Sequence record: MK250028.1
Strand: one strand, 5' to 3'
Length of the DNA: 64,000 bases
Below are positions 1 to 51,293 of the stretch, piece after piece. The translations under genes were made by a program, and so were the position numbers. The first letter of the stretch is position 1; every line of letters begins with the position of its first letter. The notes beneath the pieces are model-generated. The model saw only the letters and a program-made list of their open reading frames with translations. It did no database searches and was not told the DNA's origin.

Positions 1-3000
1 TAATACATTTGTTATATTTAAATGCTAACTTATATTTTTTCCTATAGTTGTAGTACGTCTTATAACATTTTCAAGGATCTATTTAGCTGTATGATTATAT
101 TCACCATCTGCCTTTGTAATAATATACGCATGACTATTACTTGATATTGAATTTACATGAGTTAATGTACCTGGATAATCAATATACTCATAATTTGTTA
201 ATACACCAATATCATTATAATTATTAACAGAAACATATTCATTACAATCAACTGAATTTTCCATATTAAATGAAACAAACTATGGTAAATTAGTTGATAA
301 TGTTGTATTTACTATCGGTACATCATACTATGTAAATAATGAAGACCATAAATTATGTTCATCTATTAATGACATTAATTGTTTATGAAAATTATTTTTC
401 TTATGAGCATGAATACCATTATTCATACAGTTAAGTGTCCTGAAATCAATATCATATGGTGCGTTAAGAACTGCATAATCAGCATAACTCTAATATTCAT
501 TTGTTGTAACATTCTTTATGTTAGATGTGCCTTCATGTGCATAATCAATATAGAACTAATGATTAATCAATAAGATGAACCTTTCTTTTAACGATATATA
601 AATCTCATTAGTTTTTGATAAATCATAATCGGTTAAAACAAATGCTTCAAACCCTGAATAATCTTCAAGATGAATATAACTATTAACAACCTTTGTATTT
701 AACTTAATATTAAATTTAATACCAGAAAATATAAACTCAAGACTTTTAATATTAGAATTATAATATACAGATGCTGTATCAATATTAGTATTATCTATCA
801 ATAATTTTTTAATGGAATGCTGTACAGAACTGTTTAATATACTTTCCTTATATGTAATTGATTCATTATTAATATACAATATATTATCTACTTTATTAGT
901 TACATATTGATTTGTATCATAATCTGCTACATTATAAGTATTTTCACAGAAATTACCATTAAATTCATAATTTTCATTTAATGTATTAACATCTAATATG
1001 TTATTATTATCATAATATTGTCCATTAGATTTCCATAAACATTGTACAGATGGAACAATAGGATATAATAATTCACTATTACCTGTATTATTAGGATTTG
1101 CAAAATAATTATTTGATTTTAATTCTGGAATTACAGTATCATAATTATATTCCTAATATTTTTGTTTGTCTGCTATTTTTAATTTAGTATTTTCTATAAC
1201 AGATATTGAATTCAAATTATTTACGTTTATAGTTGTACTTATATATGCTGTTTTAGAAGGTGTTATTATAAATGTCGTTCCTTTAGACACATTTACTTTA
1301 TTGAATTTAAGTTTACCATCTAAAACTTCATACATCACTCCATGTTGTATTCTATAATCCGTTTCATCTGTTGCAATAGTTTCACCTGCCGGAATATCAA
1401 TATATAAATTATCCTCATTATGTAATGTTCTGCTTAAATCAATAGTTGTATCTATATCTTTAATATTAGTAATACCCATTATAGCAACTGCGATTTCTGT
1501 AGGTTTATACAAATGAATCTTATTAGTTATTAATAACGAAGGATTAATAGTAGAAATCATGCATGTATTTACATCATATGGATTTGTTATTACACATAAA
1601 TCCTATGTTTTATTAATAAACTACTATTGATTATCTAAACTATAATTCTTATAATTATCTGGTTCCCATACGTTATTTCTCAAATATCCATTTGTAATAT
1701 TAAATACATTAACTGTATCATAAATACCATTTGTGTTATAAATTAATGGATACTTAATTTTATTAACTAAGTCACTAATATCTGTATTAACAGAATATGT
1801 ATAATTAAGTTCTTTTGTAGATTTAAACTTAACAACATTATTGTAACGCCAACCTAATGTTTCAAAACAATAATTGGAGAATGCACAATAATAATTATCA
1901 AAATAATCTGATTGATTTGTCAATGCATGCATTTCATAAGTTATATTACTATTAAAATATGAAATAGTATCATCTTTAATATTAACAGGATCTTCTGATT
2001 CAACATAACAATGTAAATCACTTATATTATTTAAATAATTATGTTCAAAATTATTATCTATATTCTTTATCCAATCATTTTCATTATCATCCGGTTGTAT
2101 ATCATTTTCAATATATTTAATACCATTATGTTTAATAAATGAAATACTGTTATTATATTCTTTATTTGTTGTATATAATGATGATACAAGACCATTTACT
2201 TTATCAAATCCAAAATAATCATAATGAAAATCATCAAACTTTGGTGTTAATATATGTTGAACATACATATTATCATATGATGAAATTATAGAAATACTCT
2301 TATCATTATAAGATCCAACTTTAATTATATTAGTATTAAATTTCTCAATACATTTTATAATACGATTAATCTGTACATCTAATGTTGCAGTTATATCATT
2401 ATATTCCAAATCCTATGAATAAAATGAAATTCTATAGAAATAAGTATTTTCAGAATATCTACATTTCTATTTGGTAACATATGGATTTATATTATAATCA
2501 GTCTCTAATAATCTATCATCATTTGATGCAATTATTTCATATACAATATGTTCAGTTGTAAACTTATTCGTTTCATATGTATTACCAGCATTAGTAACAG
2601 AAGATTTAATAGGATAATCCTATGCAATAAATTTAATATGTTCACCACATTCAATAGGTTTATTGAAATGTAATATTATAAAACTTTTATCAGTATCTTT
2701 ATCTATCTTAATTTCTGATGAATCTAATGACATTAAATTTGAGTCTGGAGTATTAGTGACATAATTCTTAAAGAAATTCTTTAAATCAATATCAGTCTAA
2801 ACTCTACCCACATTATTATTTGTTATTGCGAAGAATAATCTATCATAATATTTCTTATCGAATATTACTTTATAAATATTCTCATCTCCTTTATAAATAT
2901 CACCATTTTCATCATATTTAGTTAATACTGTATTTCCTGTACTATTCTTAGAAGAAACAACATAACCATAATTAATGAAATCATTTGCAGTTAAATATAA

Positions 3001-11630: not shown

Positions 11631-12006
11631 NNNNNNNNNNNNNNNNNNNNNNNNNNNNNNNNNNNNNNNNNNNNNNNNNNNNNNNNNNNNNNNNNNNNNN
11701 NNNNNNNNNNNNNNNNNNNNNNNNNNNNNNNNNNNNNNNNNNNNNNNNNNNNNNNNNNNNNNNNNNNNNNNNNNNNNNNNNNNNNNNNNNNNNNNNNNNN
11801 NNNNNNNNNNNNNNNNNNNNNNNNNNNNNNNNNNNNNNNNNNNNNNNNNNNNNNNNNNNNNNNNNNNNNNNNNNNNNNNNNNNNNNNNNNNNNNNNNNNN
11901 NNNNNNNNNNNNNNNNNNNNNNNNNNNNNNNNNNNNNNNNNNNNNNNNNNNNNNNNNNNNNNNNNNNNNNNNNNNNNNNNNNNNNNNNNNNNNNNNNNNN
12001 NNNNNN
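11631..12006. other. Assembly gap (376 N)
   Basis: Run of N bases in the divergent intergenic region. Confidence 0.99.
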
Positions 12007-35512: not shown

Positions 35513-36019
35513 ATGGATCGTGGTGAACGACGTTATCGTCAAAAGAAAAAGTGGATTTCTCGTTTAAAGAAATTATGGAATTCACATGTATTTTGGAATT
35601 ATATTTCTCCTGTAAAGAAAAAGAAACCAAAATGTATTAGAGAAATGAAAGAACATAGAGCTACATCATGGCAAGATTTTACGAAGGATCATTTTGGTGT
35701 ATTAGTTAAAAATACAGGAACTGTTATGACTGATAATAAACGTTTGGATATTACAGAAGAACATAAGAGAAAAATGCAAAACAGAAAACTTACAAAGGAA
35801 GATCAAGAAGAAGTTGATGAATATCTTGATAGAAAAGAACATCCATATAGGTTTGAAGATTTTTGTTGTAATTGTGATAATTTTCCTGGAGATAGATTAT
35901 ATGAATCTAGAGAATACGATGGTAAAGATGTTTGTCCATTTGTAGAAAGATTTAAATCTGGTGAATTAAATGGAGATACAGAATGGCAGAAGTTAGGATG
36001 TGAAAGTTTTATTGATTAA
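35513..36019 (+). CDS. Hypothetical protein with a Cys-containing C-terminus
   Basis: 168-aa ORF. Confidence 0.7.
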   Translation: MDRGERRYRQKKKWISRLKKLWNSHVFWNYISPVKKKKPKCIREMKEHRATSWQDFTKDHFGVLVKNTGTVMTDNKRLDITEEHKRKMQNRKLTKEDQEEVDEYLDRKEHPYRFEDFCCNCDNFPGDRLYESREYDGKDVCPFVERFKSGELNGDTEWQKLGCESFID

Positions 36020-36117
36020 TTAAATATTATTATAGGTGATTAGCAAATTATAGTTAATCACCTATAACTTTTTATATATTTTCTTATATAATCTTTAACT
36101 AATAATATTTTTAATTT

Positions 36118-37839
36118 ATGACAATGATGAAAACAGATATTGAAATTTCGCAGAGTGCACAACTTCAAAGTATTGATTATGTATTTGAAAAACTTGTTCC
36201 TTATGATGATCGTATAAAAAATGGATATATTGAGCAGTACGGTAATTATATGGGTAAAATTCCATTGACATATTTAAAATCAGGAATGGAATGTGCAAAT
36301 AAACATCTTATTCTTGTAACTTCAATTAGTCCTACTAAATCTGGTATTGGTAAGACAACTGTAAGTGTAGGATTGAATGATGCACTTAAGAAATTAAAGA
36401 AAAATTCCATTGCGGTATTGAGAGAACCTTCTCTTGGACCATGTTTTGGTATGAAAGGAGGCGCATGTGGAGGTGGTTATTCACAAGTAGTACCAATGGA
36501 TAAGATTAATCTTCATTTCACGGGAGATTTTCATGCAATTACAACAGCAAATAATATGATTGCTTCTGCAATCGATAATTATTTCTATCATAATCCAGAA
36601 AAAGAATTAGATATAAAGAAAATTACATTTAGACGCTGTTTAGATATTAATGATAGGTCTCTTAGAACTATTTACACAACACAGCGATATGGAAAACTTA
36701 TTCAAACAGGATTTGATATTACGCCAGCATCAGAAATGATGGCAATTTTTTGCATGGCATATGATATAGATGATTTACGTAAACGTATTGATAAAATTAT
36801 CATTGCAGAGCGAGAAGATGGTAGTTTTATGTATTGTAAAGAATTAGGAATAACCGGTTCAATTGTTGCATTGTTATCAGATGCGATTAAACCTAATTTA
36901 GTACAGAGTCTTTATAATAATCCTGTTATTATTCATGGTGGTCCATTCGCTAATATTGCACATGGTTGTAATTCAGTTATCGCAACACGTATGGGATTGT
37001 CATTATGCGATTATGTTGTAACAGAAGCAGGATTCGGTTCAGACCTTGGTGCTGAAAAATTCATTGATATTAAATGTAGAACTGCAGGTTTTTCACCAGA
37101 TGTTATTGTATTGGTTGTGGCTATTCCAGGTTTGAAAAATCAAGGTGGTTGTAAAGATATAACAAAGGAAGATACAAGATCACTTGAGATAGGACTCAAG
37201 AACCTTGATCAACATTTGAATGCACTTAATACATTTGGTTATAAGATTATTGTCACTAATAATGTATATGATACAGATACGCGAAATGAACAGATAATTC
37301 TTGAGAATTTCTGTAAGAGTAGAAAGGTAAAGTGTATTAAGAATACATGCTATGTAGATGGTAGAGATGGAGCATTAAATTTAGCACAAGAAGTTATTGA
37401 TACCATTGATAATACGAAGCATATAGCATTTCCAAATTGGGCATATCAAAAATATGATAATATAAAAGATAAGATTTCAGATCTTTGTGAAAATATTTAT
37501 GGTATAAATTCAGATAATATACGTTATTCATATAAGGCTGAAAAGTTTATTGAGAAATATGATAAGACATATGAGAATTATAAGGATGAATTAATTCAGG
37601 AAATTAGTGAATATCCTATTTGTATGGCAAAGACACAATATTCATTTTCAGATAATCCATCAGTATTGCCAGTGCCAACACATGATACTACATTTACTAT
37701 TGATGAAATTAAAATTAATAGAGGTGCTGGATTTTTAGTTGTTATTGCAGGTAATATGATGCGAATGCCTGGTTTACCAAAAGAACCAGCAGCAAAGAAA
37801 ATAGATTATGTTGATGGAAAAATTACAGGATTGAATTAA
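36118..37839 (+). CDS. fhs: Formate--tetrahydrofolate ligase
   Basis: TSISPTKSGIGKTT, LREPSLGP.FGMKGGACGGGYSQV.P, LHFTGDFHAIT, HGGPFANIAHG, TEAGFGSDLGAEKF, CMAKTQYSFSD and MRMPGLPK. Confidence 0.96.
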   Translation: MTMMKTDIEISQSAQLQSIDYVFEKLVPYDDRIKNGYIEQYGNYMGKIPLTYLKSGMECANKHLILVTSISPTKSGIGKTTVSVGLNDALKKLKKNSIAVLREPSLGPCFGMKGGACGGGYSQVVPMDKINLHFTGDFHAITTANNMIASAIDNYFYHNPEKELDIKKITFRRCLDINDRSLRTIYTTQRYGKLIQTGFDITPASEMMAIFCMAYDIDDLRKRIDKIIIAEREDGSFMYCKELGITGSIVALLSDAIKPNLVQSLYNNPVIIHGGPFANIAHGCNSVIATRMGLSLCDYVVTEAGFGSDLGAEKFIDIKCRTAGFSPDVIVLVVAIPGLKNQGGCKDITKEDTRSLEIGLKNLDQHLNALNTFGYKIIVTNNVYDTDTRNEQIILENFCKSRKVKCIKNTCYVDGRDGALNLAQEVIDTIDNTKHIAFPNWAYQKYDNIKDKISDLCENIYGINSDNIRYSYKAEKFIEKYDKTYENYKDELIQEISEYPICMAKTQYSFSDNPSVLPVPTHDTTFTIDEIKINRGAGFLVVIAGNMMRMPGLPKEPAAKKIDYVDGKITGLN

Positions 37840-38924
37840 TGAATGATAAAATAATAGATATAAATGAGTGGTTGAGATGGGTGATTTCCTTACACTCATC
37901 TCAAAAACAAATTAATACCATAAAACCATATTGGAAATGTAAATCTATGGGAGATTATCTTAAAGTTTTTAAAAACGATATAGGAAAATTTGGTAAGACT
38001 ATACCGGATATTAATGATACTGAATGGATAGATGGTAAATATTCATGGGAGTTAGATAGATTATTTGATATATATAAATTTGTTCCTAATTGTGAACAAC
38101 TCGCAAAGGTTAATATAGGATATTTTGTATTAAAAGAAACATTAGACAATGATAAATGGAAATATTATATTCAAGTGATAAAACAATATGATAAAGAAGT
38201 GAAAGATTATAAAGGTGGTCCATTTACATTTAGAATTATAATGGTAGACTTTGGTATTTTTAAATTATACGCACGTCAAACAAGAGAATTAGAAGGTGAC
38301 CATAAACATGTAATGTATTCTAATATTAAAAATAAAGAATTAGAGGAACAAAATAAGTTTATTGAATGCTGGAGTGATGATCAATGTATATTCATATCTA
38401 TACCAGGACTAAAAATCAATAAAGATTTAATAAAAGGTAAATCTCAAAAAATTGAATTACAAAAAGAAAAACGTTTATATTGTTTTAATGATAATAATGG
38501 AAACAAATATCAATTACCAGAATTATATTATCCTACAAATATAAGAACATTTATTGATTATTGTATAGATAAAAAAATATTACCATTTTCAAAAACTGTT
38601 AGAATTTGGTCTAAAACTGATTATTATGAGATATATTCAGACCCTGAAAATAAATCGTTCAAAGATTATATGTCAGAGGACGAAATGTTATATCGTTATC
38701 CATTTCCTATGATGAATATTAAATCAAAAAAAGAAATAAAAGAATATATTAATGATAGGAAGCAAAAACATGCATGGGAAATAAATCGAGGTTTACCAAA
38801 AACAGTTACAATAAATTATAATATAAATGATATATTCGTACCTATTGATTCAATTACGCAAGATATATGTAATGAATTTATATATAAGATGAATAATAGT
38901 AAATTATATGAAATAATACAATGA
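37839..38924 (+). CDS. Hypothetical protein (361 aa)
   Basis: Standard-code ORF overlapping the fhs stop. Confidence 0.75.
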   Translation: MNDKIIDINEWLRWVISLHSSQKQINTIKPYWKCKSMGDYLKVFKNDIGKFGKTIPDINDTEWIDGKYSWELDRLFDIYKFVPNCEQLAKVNIGYFVLKETLDNDKWKYYIQVIKQYDKEVKDYKGGPFTFRIIMVDFGIFKLYARQTRELEGDHKHVMYSNIKNKELEEQNKFIECWSDDQCIFISIPGLKINKDLIKGKSQKIELQKEKRLYCFNDNNGNKYQLPELYYPTNIRTFIDYCIDKKILPFSKTVRIWSKTDYYEIYSDPENKSFKDYMSEDEMLYRYPFPMMNIKSKKEIKEYINDRKQKHAWEINRGLPKTVTINYNINDIFVPIDSITQDICNEFIYKMNNSKLYEIIQ

Positions 38925-39415
38925 ATAAGGAATTACAACAATATATAAATAAAGCAGATAATTCTCAAAATATAAAGTATTTTGAGAATATGATGAATGC
39001 TTTATATAATAAAGCATATGAATATCGTAAATTAAGAGATGAAGCAGTTATATCTAATAAGGATTTGCGAGGTAAATATGTAAGGTTATCAAAAGAACGA
39101 GATTATGGTAATCCAGTATATATGCATGTAGTTAATCAGTTCGTTACAAATGATGGTGGTAGAGATAGATACCAAGTATATCTTGAAGGATTAACATTTA
39201 GATATAGTGATGCAACTATATATTTGGATAATATATGGCAAGAAGTAGATGGATGTAGACAAATTCATTATGATATTCATGAATTTGAAAATCTTCAAGT
39301 TAAATATTTAACAGAAGGAGAATTCAGAAAGTTATATATGGAAATGGTTAGTAATATGGTATCTATTTATGAACATGCAGAAAAGTTAATAAATAATAAA
39401 ATTTCATCAAAATAA
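38921..39415 (+). CDS. Hypothetical protein
   Basis: 164-aa ORF with a 4-nt overlap. Confidence 0.72.
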   Translation: MNKELQQYINKADNSQNIKYFENMMNALYNKAYEYRKLRDEAVISNKDLRGKYVRLSKERDYGNPVYMHVVNQFVTNDGGRDRYQVYLEGLTFRYSDATIYLDNIWQEVDGCRQIHYDIHEFENLQVKYLTEGEFRKLYMEMVSNMVSIYEHAEKLINNKISSK

Positions 39416-39561
39416 TTTTAGACTTTATTAATATAATTATGTATAAAATACATAATGAATGTTAATTAAGTTATTTTTTAATTATCAAAATTAATTAAAA
39501 TAAATTTAAAAATATTTAAGACTTTTTTAACATTCTTATGTAAAATATACATAAGATTTAA

Positions 39562-39972
39562 ATGATAGAATTCTTATATAAAGGACAAAAGTGCTATACC
39601 AATAATCTTCCGAAGAAATTAAAGAGAATGAAGATTACAGAGAATGATATTGAAATCCTTAGAGAATTTGATGAAACACAGAAGAAAGTAAAACCAGAAG
39701 ATAATAACAATGAATTTGATAATTGGACTAAAGTTGTATATTGGGATCCTATTACAAATTATACACATATTGGTTTTACACATGGTATGAATAAACCTGA
39801 TAAAAATGAATTTTTTAAAAATTCTAAATGGAATGAAGAAACAAAAACCGGGTTAAAATATTGTACTCAAGAATGGATGGATAATGTTGTTTTGTTAAAT
39901 GGAATACCTAAATATCCTATTGTAATAGGTGATGATGGTAAGCCTGTGTTAGAAACAAAATATAATTGGTAA
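39562..39972 (+). CDS. Hypothetical protein
   Basis: 136-aa ORF directly upstream of the suppressor tRNA. Confidence 0.72.
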   Translation: MIEFLYKGQKCYTNNLPKKLKRMKITENDIEILREFDETQKKVKPEDNNNEFDNWTKVVYWDPITNYTHIGFTHGMNKPDKNEFFKNSKWNEETKTGLKYCTQEWMDNVVLLNGIPKYPIVIGDDGKPVLETKYNW

Positions 39973-40049
39973 AATAAATATATTGTTCGTTATATAATTA
40001 ACGGATATGATGAGCAATATATTTTAGATATGTAAATTAAGATGTAGAA

Positions 40050-40366
40050 TGCCCTATGGTGTAATGGTAAGCACAGTAGACTCTTTAAATAGGAGCTTTA
40101 TATGGAAACATATAAATGAAAATTCCGCTAATAAACAGAAACCTTTTAAATAGAAATATTTAATTTGGCGATGACTTACTAAATTCAATATAAAATATAT
40201 TTGATAAATGGCGCAGAGACTATATACGGAATATCTAAGTTCTATATGAATATGATAATGAAATAGTCCAGACTACAAAACCTAAGTTAGTTTTAATATG
40301 GTTGTTTATGTAAAAGTAAATGTAGTACGAAATCTATTTGTCCGGGTTCGAATCCTGGTGGGGCAA
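40050..40366 (+). tRNA. Amber suppressor tRNA (anticodon CUA, tRNA-Gln-like), exons 40050-40084 and 40330-40366
   Basis: Spliced sequence TGCCCTA TG GTGT AATGGTAA GCAC A GTAGA CTCTAAA TCTAT TTGT CCGGG TTCGAAT CCTGG TGGGGCA A folds into a canonical cloverleaf with a 7-nt loop CU-CUA-AA and a U1-A72 pair. Confidence 0.9.
40085..40329 (+). mobile_element. Group I intron (245 nt, no ORF) inside the suppressor tRNA anticodon
   Basis: P1 CTCT|T...AGGAG with the U40084-G40092 wobble. P2 TTTATATG-GAAA-CATATAAA. P3 TTCCG (40123-27)/CGGAA (40227-31). R GCAGAGACTA. P7 GACTA (40218-22)/TAGTC (40264-68). ACTACA (40272-77)/TGTAGT (40321-26). Terminal G40329. Confidence 0.9.
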
Positions 40367-40406
40367 CAAACATAAGTAAAGTAATATTTTAAAGATTTGA
40401 TGAATT

Positions 40407-40691
40407 ATGAAGCAGAAGACAATTATTAAGACAGAATATTACGCAGATGATGGTAGAGTATTTAATAATGAGAATGATTGTAAGTTATATGAGGATAAAG
40501 TGAAAATTCCAAAGATTGGATTATACTCGGTTATTGATAAGTATGACGCTAAATCAGTTGTTAATTATATAGATTTGATTTTAGGACAATATAATGTTAT
40601 TGGAGATTCATATATTAGAGATACTAAAATTAAAAATATGTTAACACATCTTCAAAAACAATTTTCTAGTTATTTACCGGATGAAAAGTAA
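40407..40691 (+). CDS. Hypothetical protein
   Basis: 94-aa ORF with a Y.A.DG..F.NE.DC..YE motif common in small phage proteins. Confidence 0.7.
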   Translation: MKQKTIIKTEYYADDGRVFNNENDCKLYEDKVKIPKIGLYSVIDKYDAKSVVNYIDLILGQYNVIGDSYIRDTKIKNMLTHLQKQFSSYLPDEK

Positions 40692-40737
40692 TATATAAGA
40701 TGTCTTATTCTATTAAAAATAATAGTGAGATGATTTA

Positions 40738-40956
40738 ATGAATAAGGAAGATATATTGAAGAATGAATATACAGAAATTGCAGACTTAGCAATAAGAATG
40801 ATTAATAATGCAAAAGAAGCAGAAGCATTATATAATGAAGTAAAGAGAATTAATAGTATGCAATTAATAGAAGATAATTTATTTAACCTTCAATTTGTAA
40901 TGAATTGGCAGGATATTTTGAATAAGGTATCTATTACACAGGTTGAAGATTGTTAA
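40738..40956 (+). CDS. Hypothetical protein
   Basis: 72-aa ORF followed by a terminator hairpin (AAAGTCGAGA...TCTCGACTTT). Confidence 0.65.
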   Translation: MNKEDILKNEYTEIADLAIRMINNAKEAEALYNEVKRINSMQLIEDNLFNLQFVMNWQDILNKVSITQVEDC

Positions 40957-41049
40957 GAAATATAAAGTCGAGATTATTTTTTAGTCTCGACTTTTTTAAT
41001 TAAAATATTTTATGTATCTTTGAATTGTTAAATATAAAAATAGAATTTT

Positions 41050-41850
41050 ATGAAAGCTAAATCATATATATTTGTACATAATAAAGAAAAATCTACATAT
41101 AATATTCCAGACGAATATTTTGTAGATAATACAAATCTTAGAATAACTCATTTTAATACAGAAAATAGTTATTTTAATATATCTGCATATGGATTTCTTA
41201 TTAAGAAAGATATTTTTGATAAAGAATGTAAATCATTTTATACATTAAATCCTGTATCTAAATATACAAATGGTGATATTAATGGAAGACGCATTGCATT
41301 TGTAAAAATTAATAAAGAATTACCAAAATATGATTTAACCGGAAATGCTATTAAAAGTTCTTTATCTTCAGATAATTGGACAGTTGTAAATGTTATAGAT
41401 AATACATCAAGATGGACAAGAATTCCAGATGATTGTTATTTACTTACACCAAAGTTTAAATCAAGTGGACTTAAAATTCGGTGTTTTGAAAAAGAAGAAG
41501 ATGCTATTGCTGAATATAATAAAAATGAAGAGAAAAAATCAGCAAATAAAAAAGCAAAATGGAACGCAATAAATACGGCGCCAAATAATGGTAATATCAA
41601 TTTAGCAACACTTAAATATAAAGTTGAACGAATTCATATAAAGACAAATTATTTGAAGGATGTTCATGAAGGTGATATTATATATGGCGTTATTTCTGTA
41701 TTAGAGAATGGTAAGAATAAACTTAATGTATCATCTCATTATGCAAATTATGTAGATGTATATGTTAATGATAAATTATATAAAACAGTTCCCATGAATG
41801 TATTTGGAGATTTACTTTCAAAACATTTACAATTATCTGTTTTTGTTTAA
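41050..41850 (+). CDS. Hypothetical early protein
   Basis: 266-aa ORF behind the GTATCTTTG box at 41014. Confidence 0.75.
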   Translation: MKAKSYIFVHNKEKSTYNIPDEYFVDNTNLRITHFNTENSYFNISAYGFLIKKDIFDKECKSFYTLNPVSKYTNGDINGRRIAFVKINKELPKYDLTGNAIKSSLSSDNWTVVNVIDNTSRWTRIPDDCYLLTPKFKSSGLKIRCFEKEEDAIAEYNKNEEKKSANKKAKWNAINTAPNNGNINLATLKYKVERIHIKTNYLKDVHEGDIIYGVISVLENGKNKLNVSSHYANYVDVYVNDKLYKTVPMNVFGDLLSKHLQLSVFV

Positions 41851-41876
41851 TTAATAATCTTAAAAATAATTTTAAT

Positions 41877-42179
41877 ATGAAATTTTCAACATATATTAAT
41901 AATATAATAGATGCAATATTTTTTCCGAATTTTCTTATTGAAGAACGGGAAGATAATAAGAAATTAAATGAATCATATGAAAATTATATCAAATCAATTA
42001 ATGATTATGGTGATTCAGGATGGAAAGAAGCAACTAAATATGCGAAGTTAGTAGATAATTTAAGTTATCAACTAGATGTATTAGCAAGGGATTATAAGAA
42101 TTTAACAAATATAAATAGAGATTTAAAAAGAAAATTAGAACGGTATTATAAAACAGGAAAAAATTCTAAGAAAAAGTAA
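41877..42179 (+). CDS. Hypothetical protein
   Basis: 100-aa ORF with a coiled-coil C-terminus. Confidence 0.65.
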   Translation: MKFSTYINNIIDAIFFPNFLIEEREDNKKLNESYENYIKSINDYGDSGWKEATKYAKLVDNLSYQLDVLARDYKNLTNINRDLKRKLERYYKTGKNSKKK

Positions 42180-42217: not shown

Positions 42218-42624
42218 GGGGATGAATTTGGATTTGCTTATTAATTATGTGGTAATAAATCGTGTAGGAATGTTAATAGCCTTTTGTAGCAATACAAAGA
42301 AACTTAGCAAATAAATTTAAATGACGACGAAATAGAATTTCGTATGGCAGCTTAATCCTGATAGGATTGGTAATATACACCCATTGAAGCATTTGCTCCT
42401 TACACGGTAAGTTTGAGCATTGTCACAGAGTTCGTAAGAGTGATAATCTCTGTTAAATAAAACTCTTACATATACTTATTCATTGTCCAATAAGAGTGAT
42501 TATGACATTAAACTATTTAACTCTAATAACACAGATATAAATGAAAACTAATAAAGACATACGCACGTAGATAGTTTATTATTGACAAGTTAGTAATACG
42601 TGGTTTCGAGTACCACCATCTCCA
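42218..42624 (+). ncRNA. ssrA: tmRNA, tag peptide (A)DDEIEFRMAA
   Basis: 5' GGGGATG pairs with 3' CATCTCC-A, including a G3-U70-type pair. T arm GTGGT-TTCGAGT-ACCAC. Tag ORF 42323-42355 follows ATAAATTTAAAT and ends GCA GCT TAA. Confidence 0.9.
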
Positions 42625-42763
42625 CATTTTTAGATTATATTTCATAATATAGAATTTTTAATTGTTTAATTTTGTAAATGAGTTGTATGTTTAGATAAAC
42701 ATATGACTCATTTTTTTGTATAATAATAAATAAGATAATAAAACTAAATATAAGCATAAATAT

Positions 42764-44650
42764 ATGCCAACTAAATTTATAGCAAGAAAGTTTAATCCAG
42801 GGAAAGCAGATCATAATAAAATAAATACACTTATTAATCTGTCTTCACTTAGTTTAAATTCAGCATAGAGTATTCTTAAAACTTCATTGGCTTTAGGATC
42901 TACTCAAACAAGTAATTATTCTGGTGATTCATTAACACCGTTTAATGATATTTTAAATCAAGATTAGAATAAGTTTACATAGTATGCAGATATTACTAAA
43001 AATACAAGTTAGTCTTATGCATACTATGATTTGTCATATCAATAGAGAAGAGAATAGTTAAGGTAGTTTGCTTCACAACAAACTATTTCATTTGTTTTAG
43101 ATACTATTGCAGATGAATCTATTATATTGGATGAAAATAATTATTTTGCATAGTTAGATTTAAATCTTCTTAAATTAAAACTTAATACTAATTATAAAGG
43201 TGCAAATGGAGAAACTGCAGATGATTTAATAAAGAATTGTCAGAAAGCATTTAAGATTATATATTCAACATATGGATGGGATAAATCTAATGATGCATGG
43301 AATTATTTTAAGAAATTTCTTATAGAAGGTTATCTTGCATTTGAGATTGTTGTTGATAATCTTATGAAACCTACAAGAATCATAGGTATGAGGGAATTGG
43401 ATCCTGCTACATTGGAACCAGATATTGAAATTGATCCAATGACAAATAAAGAAGTAAAGGTTTGGTATCAATATAAAGGTGACGCATAGTTAGAAAGGAA
43501 AATTCCAGATTCTAATATTGTATATATATCATGGTCAACAGGTATGTATGGAGAGTAGTCACGTGTATCATATCTAGAAGGTTTAATAAGATCATATACA
43601 ATGTTAACATAGTTGGAGACTTCTCGTATGGTATGGAATATCATGAATGCATAGAAAAGAGTTAAAGTTGGTATTCCTGTTGGTAATATTTCTTAGGATA
43701 AAGCTCGTGCACGCGTAAATGAAGTTAAAGCAGATTGGAATGAAGAAACAACAGTTGATGAAATATCAGGTGAGATGGTAGTAAATGGACAACCACGATT
43801 CTCTTTTTCAAAGACACATTTCTTCCCTGTACGTGATGGTAATTCAATGACTATAGAAGAAATCCCTACAGAAGGATATGATTTAAGTGATATTACTCCA
43901 TTGAAATATTTCTGGAGGCGTTTCATATTAGAAACTAAAATACCCGCTAATAGATTTATGATTGACCCTGCAGCTGAAGGTGCACATCCATTAGGTGGTG
44001 ATGATGCAAGTATAACACGAGAGGAATATGCGTTTGGACGTTTTATTAGTCGTGTTAGAAATATATATCGTGAAATTTTGTTAAAACCATTATGGGTACA
44101 AATATGTTTAATGATGCCAGAGTTAGCAAGTTCTGAATTATTGAAACAATGTATAGGTATTGTTTTTAATGAAGAAAATATGTTTGTTAAAGCAAAAGAA
44201 AGAACTGCGTTAAAACAAGGCGCGGAAATTATAGGTACATTAGCATAGATTCAATTAGGTGAGAATAAACCATTCTTTAGTATGAAATTCTTAATTGAGA
44301 AATTCTTAGGTATGTCTGATGAAGATTTTGCACTTAATGAGAAATATAAACAAGGTGAAATTATAGAGCGCTTAGAACAAGCTAAAACTATTAAACAACA
44401 TCAAGAAATGGGTAAACAAGTTGGTGAACAACAAGGTAATGGAACTCCTGGTGAAATGGATTTCGGCGGAGGTTCTGATGCAGGTGGCGGAAGTTCATTT
44501 GACGATTCATTTGGAGGCGGTTCTGATGCAGGCGGTGATTTTTCTGGAGGTGATGAAGTATTCTCTGGTGGTGACACTGGTATGGGATCCGGTGGTTCTG
44601 AAATTGCAGATACTGGTGGCGGTGATGAAGGTGGAGGTGACTTCGCTTAA
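42764..44650 (+). CDS. gp20: T4 gp20-like portal protein, TAG-recoded, 628 aa
   Basis: Single frame from ATG 42764 to TAA 44650. DTIADESII, FLIEGYLAFEI, RELDP, SYLEGLIRSY..L, IPVGN, FFPVRDG, LKYF and ITREEYAFGRFISRVR follow the gp20 motif order. Confidence 0.88.
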
Positions 44651-51044: not shown

Positions 51045-51159
51045 GCTAGTATAGTTTAGTGGCAAAACACCCAAATCCCAGGGATAAGAGATGGTTTGAG
51101 TTGTAGTGTACAATACAATATACAGAAGATTTTGGTGAGTTCGATTCTCACTGCTAGCT
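51045..51159 (+). ncRNA. tRNA-like RNA with a 65-nt insertion replacing the anticodon arm
   Basis: Acceptor GCTAGTA/TGCTAGC-U, D arm GTTT-AGTGGCA-AAAC and T arm GTGAG-TTCGATT-CTCAC. No canonical anticodon arm. Confidence 0.65.
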
Positions 51160-51165
51160 CAATAT

Positions 51166-51293
51166 GAAGTGCGTAGTTTAAATGGTAAAACATCCTTTGA
51201 GTAGGACTCTGACGAGAGATAGATAACAATGTTAGACTCTATTTAATTCCATTGTTTTATTAATGAGTATAGGTTCGAATCCTATGGTACTTC
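51166..51293 (+). ncRNA. tRNA-like RNA with a 76-nt multibranched insertion
   Basis: GAAGTGC/GTACTTC acceptor-like helix, D arm GTTT-AAATGGTA-AAAC and T arm ATAGG-TTCGAAT-CCTAT. Confidence 0.65.

Follow-up and report, generated by a model that had tools for sequence, protein, structure and literature searches.

Small self-splicing group I introns without reading frames occur in the anticodon loops of bacterial tRNAs, as in tRNA-Ile(CAU) of Azoarcus and tRNA-Arg(CCU) of Agrobacterium. There the 5' exon ends in U, and the intron lies 3' of anticodon position 36 in an ordinary sense tRNA of a cellular genome; their sequences were not compared with the intron described here. In phages, a 2014 review stated that all group I introns known then were in protein-coding genes (PMC3984707). 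Among the Lak megaphages, Devoto et al. 2019 (PMC6784885) described enigmatic tRNA introns, inserts that bacterial-mode tRNAscan-SE misses. These are about 90-140 nt, were not classed as group I, and in the B phages were reported only in Tyr(GTA). A ribozyme physically linked to recoding tRNAs of gut phages that use another genetic code is also described, the theta (HDV-like) ribozyme (PMC10879173), but it is found adjacent to viral tRNAs and is not a splicing intron inside an anticodon, and that paper mentions neither introns nor Lak. We found no report of a group I intron in a suppressor tRNA, although the literature searched did not include most subscription-journal papers, and so an earlier report is not excluded.

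The locus analyzed here lies in a 64,000-nt stretch of DNA (the window) with 26% G+C, which reads as long open frames only if TAG is a sense codon. The window matches Prevotella phage Lak-B1 371984-435983 with no mismatch outside a run of 376 N at 11631-12006 (masked or a gap). The earlier note had proposed that 40050-40366 is an amber suppressor tRNA split inside its CUA anticodon by a group I intron. That observation stands, with every coordinate it gave. The closest known system is the same intron family in tRNA-Leu(UAA) of Bacteroidales. The window intron is 62-65% identical to Prevotellaceae copies. It shares with them the P1-P9 core, the invariant P7, insertion in the anticodon loop right after a U that pairs with G in P1, a following AAA and, in the compact members, the lack of a reading frame. 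It differs in that the host is a stop-codon suppressor tRNA(CUA), the break is at 35|36 rather than 34|35, the guide sequence is GGAG rather than GAGU, and it is carried by a phage.

A tRNA(CUA) gene interrupted in its anticodon

All features are on the plus strand of the window. The 5' exon (40050-40084, 35 nt) supplies the acceptor 5' strand, the D arm, the anticodon-stem 5' strand and loop bases C32, U33, C34 and U35. The 3' exon (40330-40366, 37 nt) supplies A36, A37, A38, the anticodon-stem 3' strand, the variable loop, the T arm, the acceptor 3' strand and the discriminator A. The next bases are CAA, so CCA is not encoded. Joined at U40084|A40330, where the sequence across the junction reads GTAGACTCTAAATCTATT, the exons form 72 nt that ARAGORN folds as a canonical cloverleaf with the loop CU-CUA-AA and the anticodon at positions 34-36. 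The break is therefore between positions 35 and 36, as the earlier note said. Default ARAGORN and the Rfam tRNA model both find nothing at this position. ARAGORN in intron mode finds the gene but places the break one base too early and reports Ser(CGA), which would end both the exon and the intron in C and is incompatible with group I chemistry. Across the family, this mode puts splice sites 1-4 bases off and names wrong anticodons (Ser-CGA, His, Arg and others), and those calls were rejected in favor of the group I rules. A chance match or an assembly artefact is ruled out, since 40030-40390 is 100% identical in the separately deposited records of Lak-B1, B3, B6 and B9, and the same sequence occurs in three IMG/VR contigs.

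The intervening 245 nt (40085-40329) end in the terminal G40329. As the earlier note had suggested as a check, we ran the Rfam group I model (RF00028, Intron_gpI) on the intron. The match is full-length, on the right strand, and aligns the J6/7-P7 and J8/7-P7' segments with high posterior probability, but it scores only 15.7 bits (E 0.14) against the curated threshold of 50, which by itself leaves membership unsettled. The threshold is an operational test and not a defining property, and at that threshold the model misses most family members, including the Bacteroidales Leu introns. Family members are identified here by locus numbers (L numbers) assigned during collection. Of the aligned homologues, L060 scores 56 bits, above threshold, L042 scores 49.1 and L082 scores 31; the AT-rich phage copies score lowest, and other AT-rich members are not detected.

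The family was collected starting from Blast, which showed that the intron is 74% identical to an unannotated stretch of crAss-like phage cr115_1 and that its core matches Lak-C1. In cr115_1, the architecture is the same, a tRNA whose loop becomes CU-CUA-AC after removal of a 228-nt homologue. An 18-mer shared by these copies, AAATAGTCCAGACTACAA, located at P7'/P9, recovered 48 IMG/VR loci and at least 80 loci in prokaryote genome assemblies, almost all Bacteroidales. A search pattern intended to be specific to CUA hosts (CTCTT, a gap, GGAGCTTTA) was too loose; all 120 loci it returned were chance matches, and none had the group I core.

Thirteen compact members were aligned. RNAalifold recovered P2, P3, P4, P5, P5a, P6, P9, P9a and P9b, and the pseudoknotted P7 and P8 were added by hand. 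Over 47 pairs, 94.8% of cells are standard pairs, and 30 pairs show compensatory changes. With the 3' partners slid by 1-3 columns, these figures fall to 33-44% and 9-18, and in 500 column shuffles the maxima are 80.4% and 23. P2 (40100-40104/40109-40113) has compensatory changes in all 5 of its pairs. P3 (40123-40127/40227-40231) has 13 of 13 standard pairs at every position, with compensatory changes at 4 of 5. The P4-P6 domain (40136-40204) consists of P4 at 40136-37/40172-73, P5 at 40142-43/40167-68, P5a at 40146-49/40160-63 and P6 at 40185-89/40200-04; P4 is very short, with only 2 covarying pairs. P7 pairs GACUAU (40218-40223) with AUAGUC (40263-40268, inside the 18-mer), forms a pseudoknot with P3, and is invariant in 13 of 13 sequences, as is the terminal G. 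In P8 (40232-35/40254-57), 3 of 4 pairs covary. P9 (40272-76/40322-26) encloses hairpins P9a (40279-82/40300-03) and P9b (40305-09/40316-20). We conclude that the insert is a group I intron of the small (IC3-like) tRNA-intron type. No homing endonuclease frame is present within it: the only frames of 60 aa or more overlapping the intron are two antisense TTG-start frames that need 2-3 TAG codons read as sense.

The position of the splice site is supported by the guide sequence. P1 (40081-40095) pairs exon CUCU (40081-40084) with GGAG (40092-40095) as C40081-G40095, U40082-A40094, C40083-G40093 and the wobble U40084-G40092, and no other register gives more than 2 pairs. Across 18 homologues, the guide changes with the host tRNA. 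In 9 of 10 CUA hosts, the exon ends CUCU and the guide is GGAG, while L060 pairs UCU with GGA. In 7 of 8 Leu(UAA), Lys(UUU) and Ile(UAU) hosts, the exon ends (A)CUU and the guide is GAGU or its first three bases; the automatic search did not recover it for L021. The wobble thus falls after U35 in CUA hosts and after U34 in the others. Eleven distinct CUA-host genes, counting the window, all give canonical tRNA(cta) when spliced by the group I rules, each starting with U1. Two CUA-type members on IMG/VR contigs, L022 (+) and L032 (-), have an intron that appears to end in C instead of G (…AGTAGTAC|AAACCC…), and they may be inactive copies or may use a different 3' boundary. No intron-less allele with identical exons was found in IMG/VR or in metagenome contigs, and so the junction rests on the group I rules, the guide covariation and alignment to the nearest intron-less relatives. 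Those are CUA tRNAs of crAss-like phages, for example one of cr7_1 annotated tRNA-Gln, which are about 85% identical, have the same acceptor stem and align across the junction without a gap.

Distribution and descent of the intron family

In cellular genomes, the family sits almost only in tRNA-Leu(UAA), including Prevotellaceae and a complete 3.3-Mb Bacteroidales chromosome, and the spliced products are tRNA-Leu(taa). In the phage contigs, about 15 of the 48 loci are CUA hosts, and the others are Leu(UAA), Arg(UCU), Lys(UUU) and Ile(UAU). Besides the window gene, at least 10 other distinct CUA tRNAs from gut phages, including crAss-like cr115_1, carry the intron. Larger members (590-780 nt) encode HNH endonucleases. 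The closest relative of the window intron (about 80% identity), also in a CUA tRNA, is L068, on an 8.7-kb contig (JAKSUE010000044.1) from a MAG labelled 'archaeon', which is probably a phage contig that was binned wrongly. The phage contig of another CUA-type member, L035, also carries a RAGATH-1 hammerhead ribozyme (73 bits) at 1110-1213 (-).

In a maximum-likelihood tree, the window intron lies in a well-supported clade of 8 CUA-type introns (98/99), which is one branch of an unresolved group made up mostly of Leu(UAA) introns. Other CUA-type introns (the L035/L036/L061 group, L038 and L060) fall elsewhere, with L060 in a different deep clade, and CUA tRNAs were therefore probably entered more than once. 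This is tentative because of long branches and some errors in the automatic host labels (L061 is CUA by manual check, and L071, L090 and L100 are probably Leu); only the manually checked rows are relied on.

Lak-B1 itself has only two copies of the family. The second, 348 nt, is at Lak-B1 291147-291495, outside the window (loci L012 and L020), in a Leu(UAA)-like gene with guide GAGU. ARAGORN cannot fold its spliced product, so the 5' half may be degenerate or unusual; Devoto et al. list Leu-TAA only for A1 and A2. Two oversized tRNA-like genes within the window, at 51045-51159 and about 51167-51293 (+; 115 and 127 nt), correspond to the 'Gly CCC' and 'Undet' entries of Devoto et al. The first matches the tRNA model over its full length at 36 bits and appears by eye to have an insert of about 45 nt after the anticodon arm. 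That insert is not in the anticodon loop, and the family profile finds no copy of this intron family there.

Possible dependence on the split gene, and the alternative allele

An intron-less CUA tRNA elsewhere in the genome had been named in advance as evidence that would undo a timing role. ARAGORN with and without introns, Infernal with the tRNA model and a scan for CUA-loop hairpins find no other CUA tRNA in Lak-B1. The need for TAG decoding is heavy: of 292 stop-to-stop frames of 200 codons or more, 173 contain TAG, 1292 in all, while 263 end in TAA. The T4-like portal protein gene (Gp20; 42764-44650, +), 2.4 kb downstream, has 14 in-frame TAG codons, and several frames longer than 600 codons have 13-25. 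The tRNA gene lies in a block without TAG (35513-42179), which fits the published view that the code-change machinery is encoded in standard code (10.1101/2021.08.26.457843). That block includes a full-length formate-tetrahydrofolate ligase gene (36118-37839, +; Pfam FTHFS, 676 bits), which looks like an auxiliary metabolic gene. Between the suppressor tRNA and the portal gene is a phage-encoded tmRNA (42218-42627, +; Rfam 47.3 bits, threshold 47), which ARAGORN calls a permuted tmRNA with tag peptide DDEIEFRMAA.

The notion that no suppressor exists until splicing is too strong, because Lak-B1 also encodes a canonical tRNA(UUA) at 344976-345048, and ochre-type tRNAs can also read UAG by wobble. 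Crisci 2021 found this tRNA in 51 of 51 Lak genomes, though TAA remains the main stop codon, but a CTA suppressor in only 38 of 51. One could accordingly suppose that the split gene is inactive and that UAG is read by tRNA(UUA), or by a host or modified tRNA, and the poor Rfam score of the window copy is in keeping with that. We consider it very unlikely. Every helix of the intron and every arm of the tRNA is intact in the window copy, the sequence is identical in four separately deposited records, and the compensatory changes across the family point to continued selection for folding.

The locus is polymorphic among the Lak-B phages. Devoto et al. predicted Sup-CTA tRNAs in A1, A2, C1, B2, B4 and B5 (Table S2B), and their Table S2A gives B7 and B8 a second Sup as well. 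For B1, B3, B6 and B9, exactly the four records that carry the intron, only one Sup tRNA is listed, and it is TTA where Table S2B shows the anticodon (B1, B3); the five sister genomes have two. The split thus does hide the gene from scanners, as the earlier note expected. In B2, B4 and B5, the 406-bp cassette of the window (39973-40378) is replaced, between flanks that are 98-99.8% identical, by an 877-bp cassette. It contains a different, intron-less tRNA(CUA) and, directly upstream, a free-standing GIY-YIG endonuclease-like gene (253 aa, 34.4 bits, 8 in-frame TAG codons; 286-1047 of the Lak-B5 locus L006). Both alleles supply a CUA tRNA, which supports function of the split gene and shows that the Lak-B life cycle does not need the intron.

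The alternative allele suggests that the intron might persist because it breaks up the DNA target of a homing endonuclease, either the GIY-YIG enzyme or the HNH enzymes of larger family members, so that the intron-bearing allele would be immune in mixed infections. There are precedents in T4 SegB, acting in the tRNA gene region, and in free-standing endonucleases that target intron insertion sites (PMC2988022, PMC3984707), such as cyanophage F-CphI at psbA. However, the target of the GIY-YIG enzyme is unknown, its own neighboring tRNA has no intron, there are no cleavage data, and nothing here shows cleavage near the anticodon. We regard this role as doubtful, although it can hold together with the main explanation below.

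Interpretation

The interpretation in the earlier note is only partly supported. The nature of the split gene, the need for TAG decoding, the lack of an intron-less CUA tRNA elsewhere in Lak-B1 and the concealment from scanners all hold. The proposal that splicing times or gates the code switch is not supported. In its favor, this is the only CUA tRNA in the genome, it sits next to heavily recoded structural genes, and the intron is found again and again in CUA tRNAs with different bodies and in more than one intron lineage. Borges et al. (10.1101/2021.08.26.457843) propose that recoding times late genes, and the theta ribozymes show that ribozymes are linked to recoding in gut phages. Against it are the intron-less allele of B2, B4 and B5, the lack of anything identified beyond a P1-P9 core in the 245 nt, and the presence of the same family in Leu, Lys, Arg and Ile tRNAs, where no code switch is involved, and in cellular genomes. 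Related small tRNA introns (Azoarcus, Anabaena) splice quickly. A gate that is slow or conditional on, for example, GTP, Mg2+, folding or a phage or host factor, and that delays the CUA tRNA and so times translation of TAG-containing late genes, is not excluded, but it is unlikely and has no positive evidence. A further suggestion, that the intron shields the anticodon from host nucleases, is also unlikely, because those enzymes cut the anticodon loop of tRNA, and the spliced tRNA has that loop intact.

The best explanation, to which we assign a probability of about 0.78, is that 40050-40366 is the single tRNA(CUA) gene of Lak-B1, a Gln-type amber suppressor with U1-A72, interrupted by a compact group I intron that is a selfish or neutral passenger and splices well enough to do no harm. 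In the inferred mechanism, the precursor folds into P1-P9, and a free guanosine attacks after U40084, held in the wobble with G40092. G40329 then takes the guanosine site in P7, the exons are joined, and CCA is added afterwards. The tRNA would then read the many in-frame UAG codons, which the literature assigns to Gln (Devoto 2019; Crisci 2021). The analysis establishes the anatomy, the homology, the covariation, the absence of any other CUA tRNA and the heavy use of TAG, whereas self-splicing activity, the amino acid charged and the passenger status are inferred. Splicing with guanosine and Mg2+ was not assayed, nor were charging with Gln and activity on the ribosome, though U1-A72 and the similarity to tRNAs annotated as Gln fit them. 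No RNA run containing the window was found, and four rumen metatranscriptome runs compared with L024, a related CUA-type locus, covered only about 60 nt of the conserved core and a neighboring gene without showing any joints. Those matches probably come from introns of other organisms and say nothing for or against splicing. Passenger status is argued from parsimony and was not tested. It is possible, though we think it improbable, that selection and not just tolerance keeps the intron in these tRNAs, with splicing as a checkpoint that sets when, or whether, the cell switches to the phage's genetic code, or with the intron making the suppressor locus immune to rival homing endonucleases. Either would explain why different intron lineages have entered different CUA tRNAs in Lak and crAss-like phages.

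The split gene fills a gap in published annotation, since Lak-B1, B3, B6 and B9 were reported without a CTA suppressor, and it may be a new setting for group I introns. It also offers a reason for suppressors missing elsewhere. Suppressor tRNAs were found in only about 40% of TAG-recoded phages (Borges et al.) and, as noted, in 38 of 51 Lak genomes (Crisci et al.), and some of the others may be split by group I introns too long for tRNA scanners. The intron appears to have moved from the tRNA-Leu(UAA) of the host lineage into suppressor tRNAs found almost only on phage contigs, where the target loop is nearly the same (CU-CUA-AA against CU-UAA-AA), with a matching change of guide sequence from GAGU to GGAG. 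In these phages, a self-splicing step would sit upstream of the code switch, and in Lak-B1 the intron would make a ribozyme step obligatory for producing the CUA tRNA.
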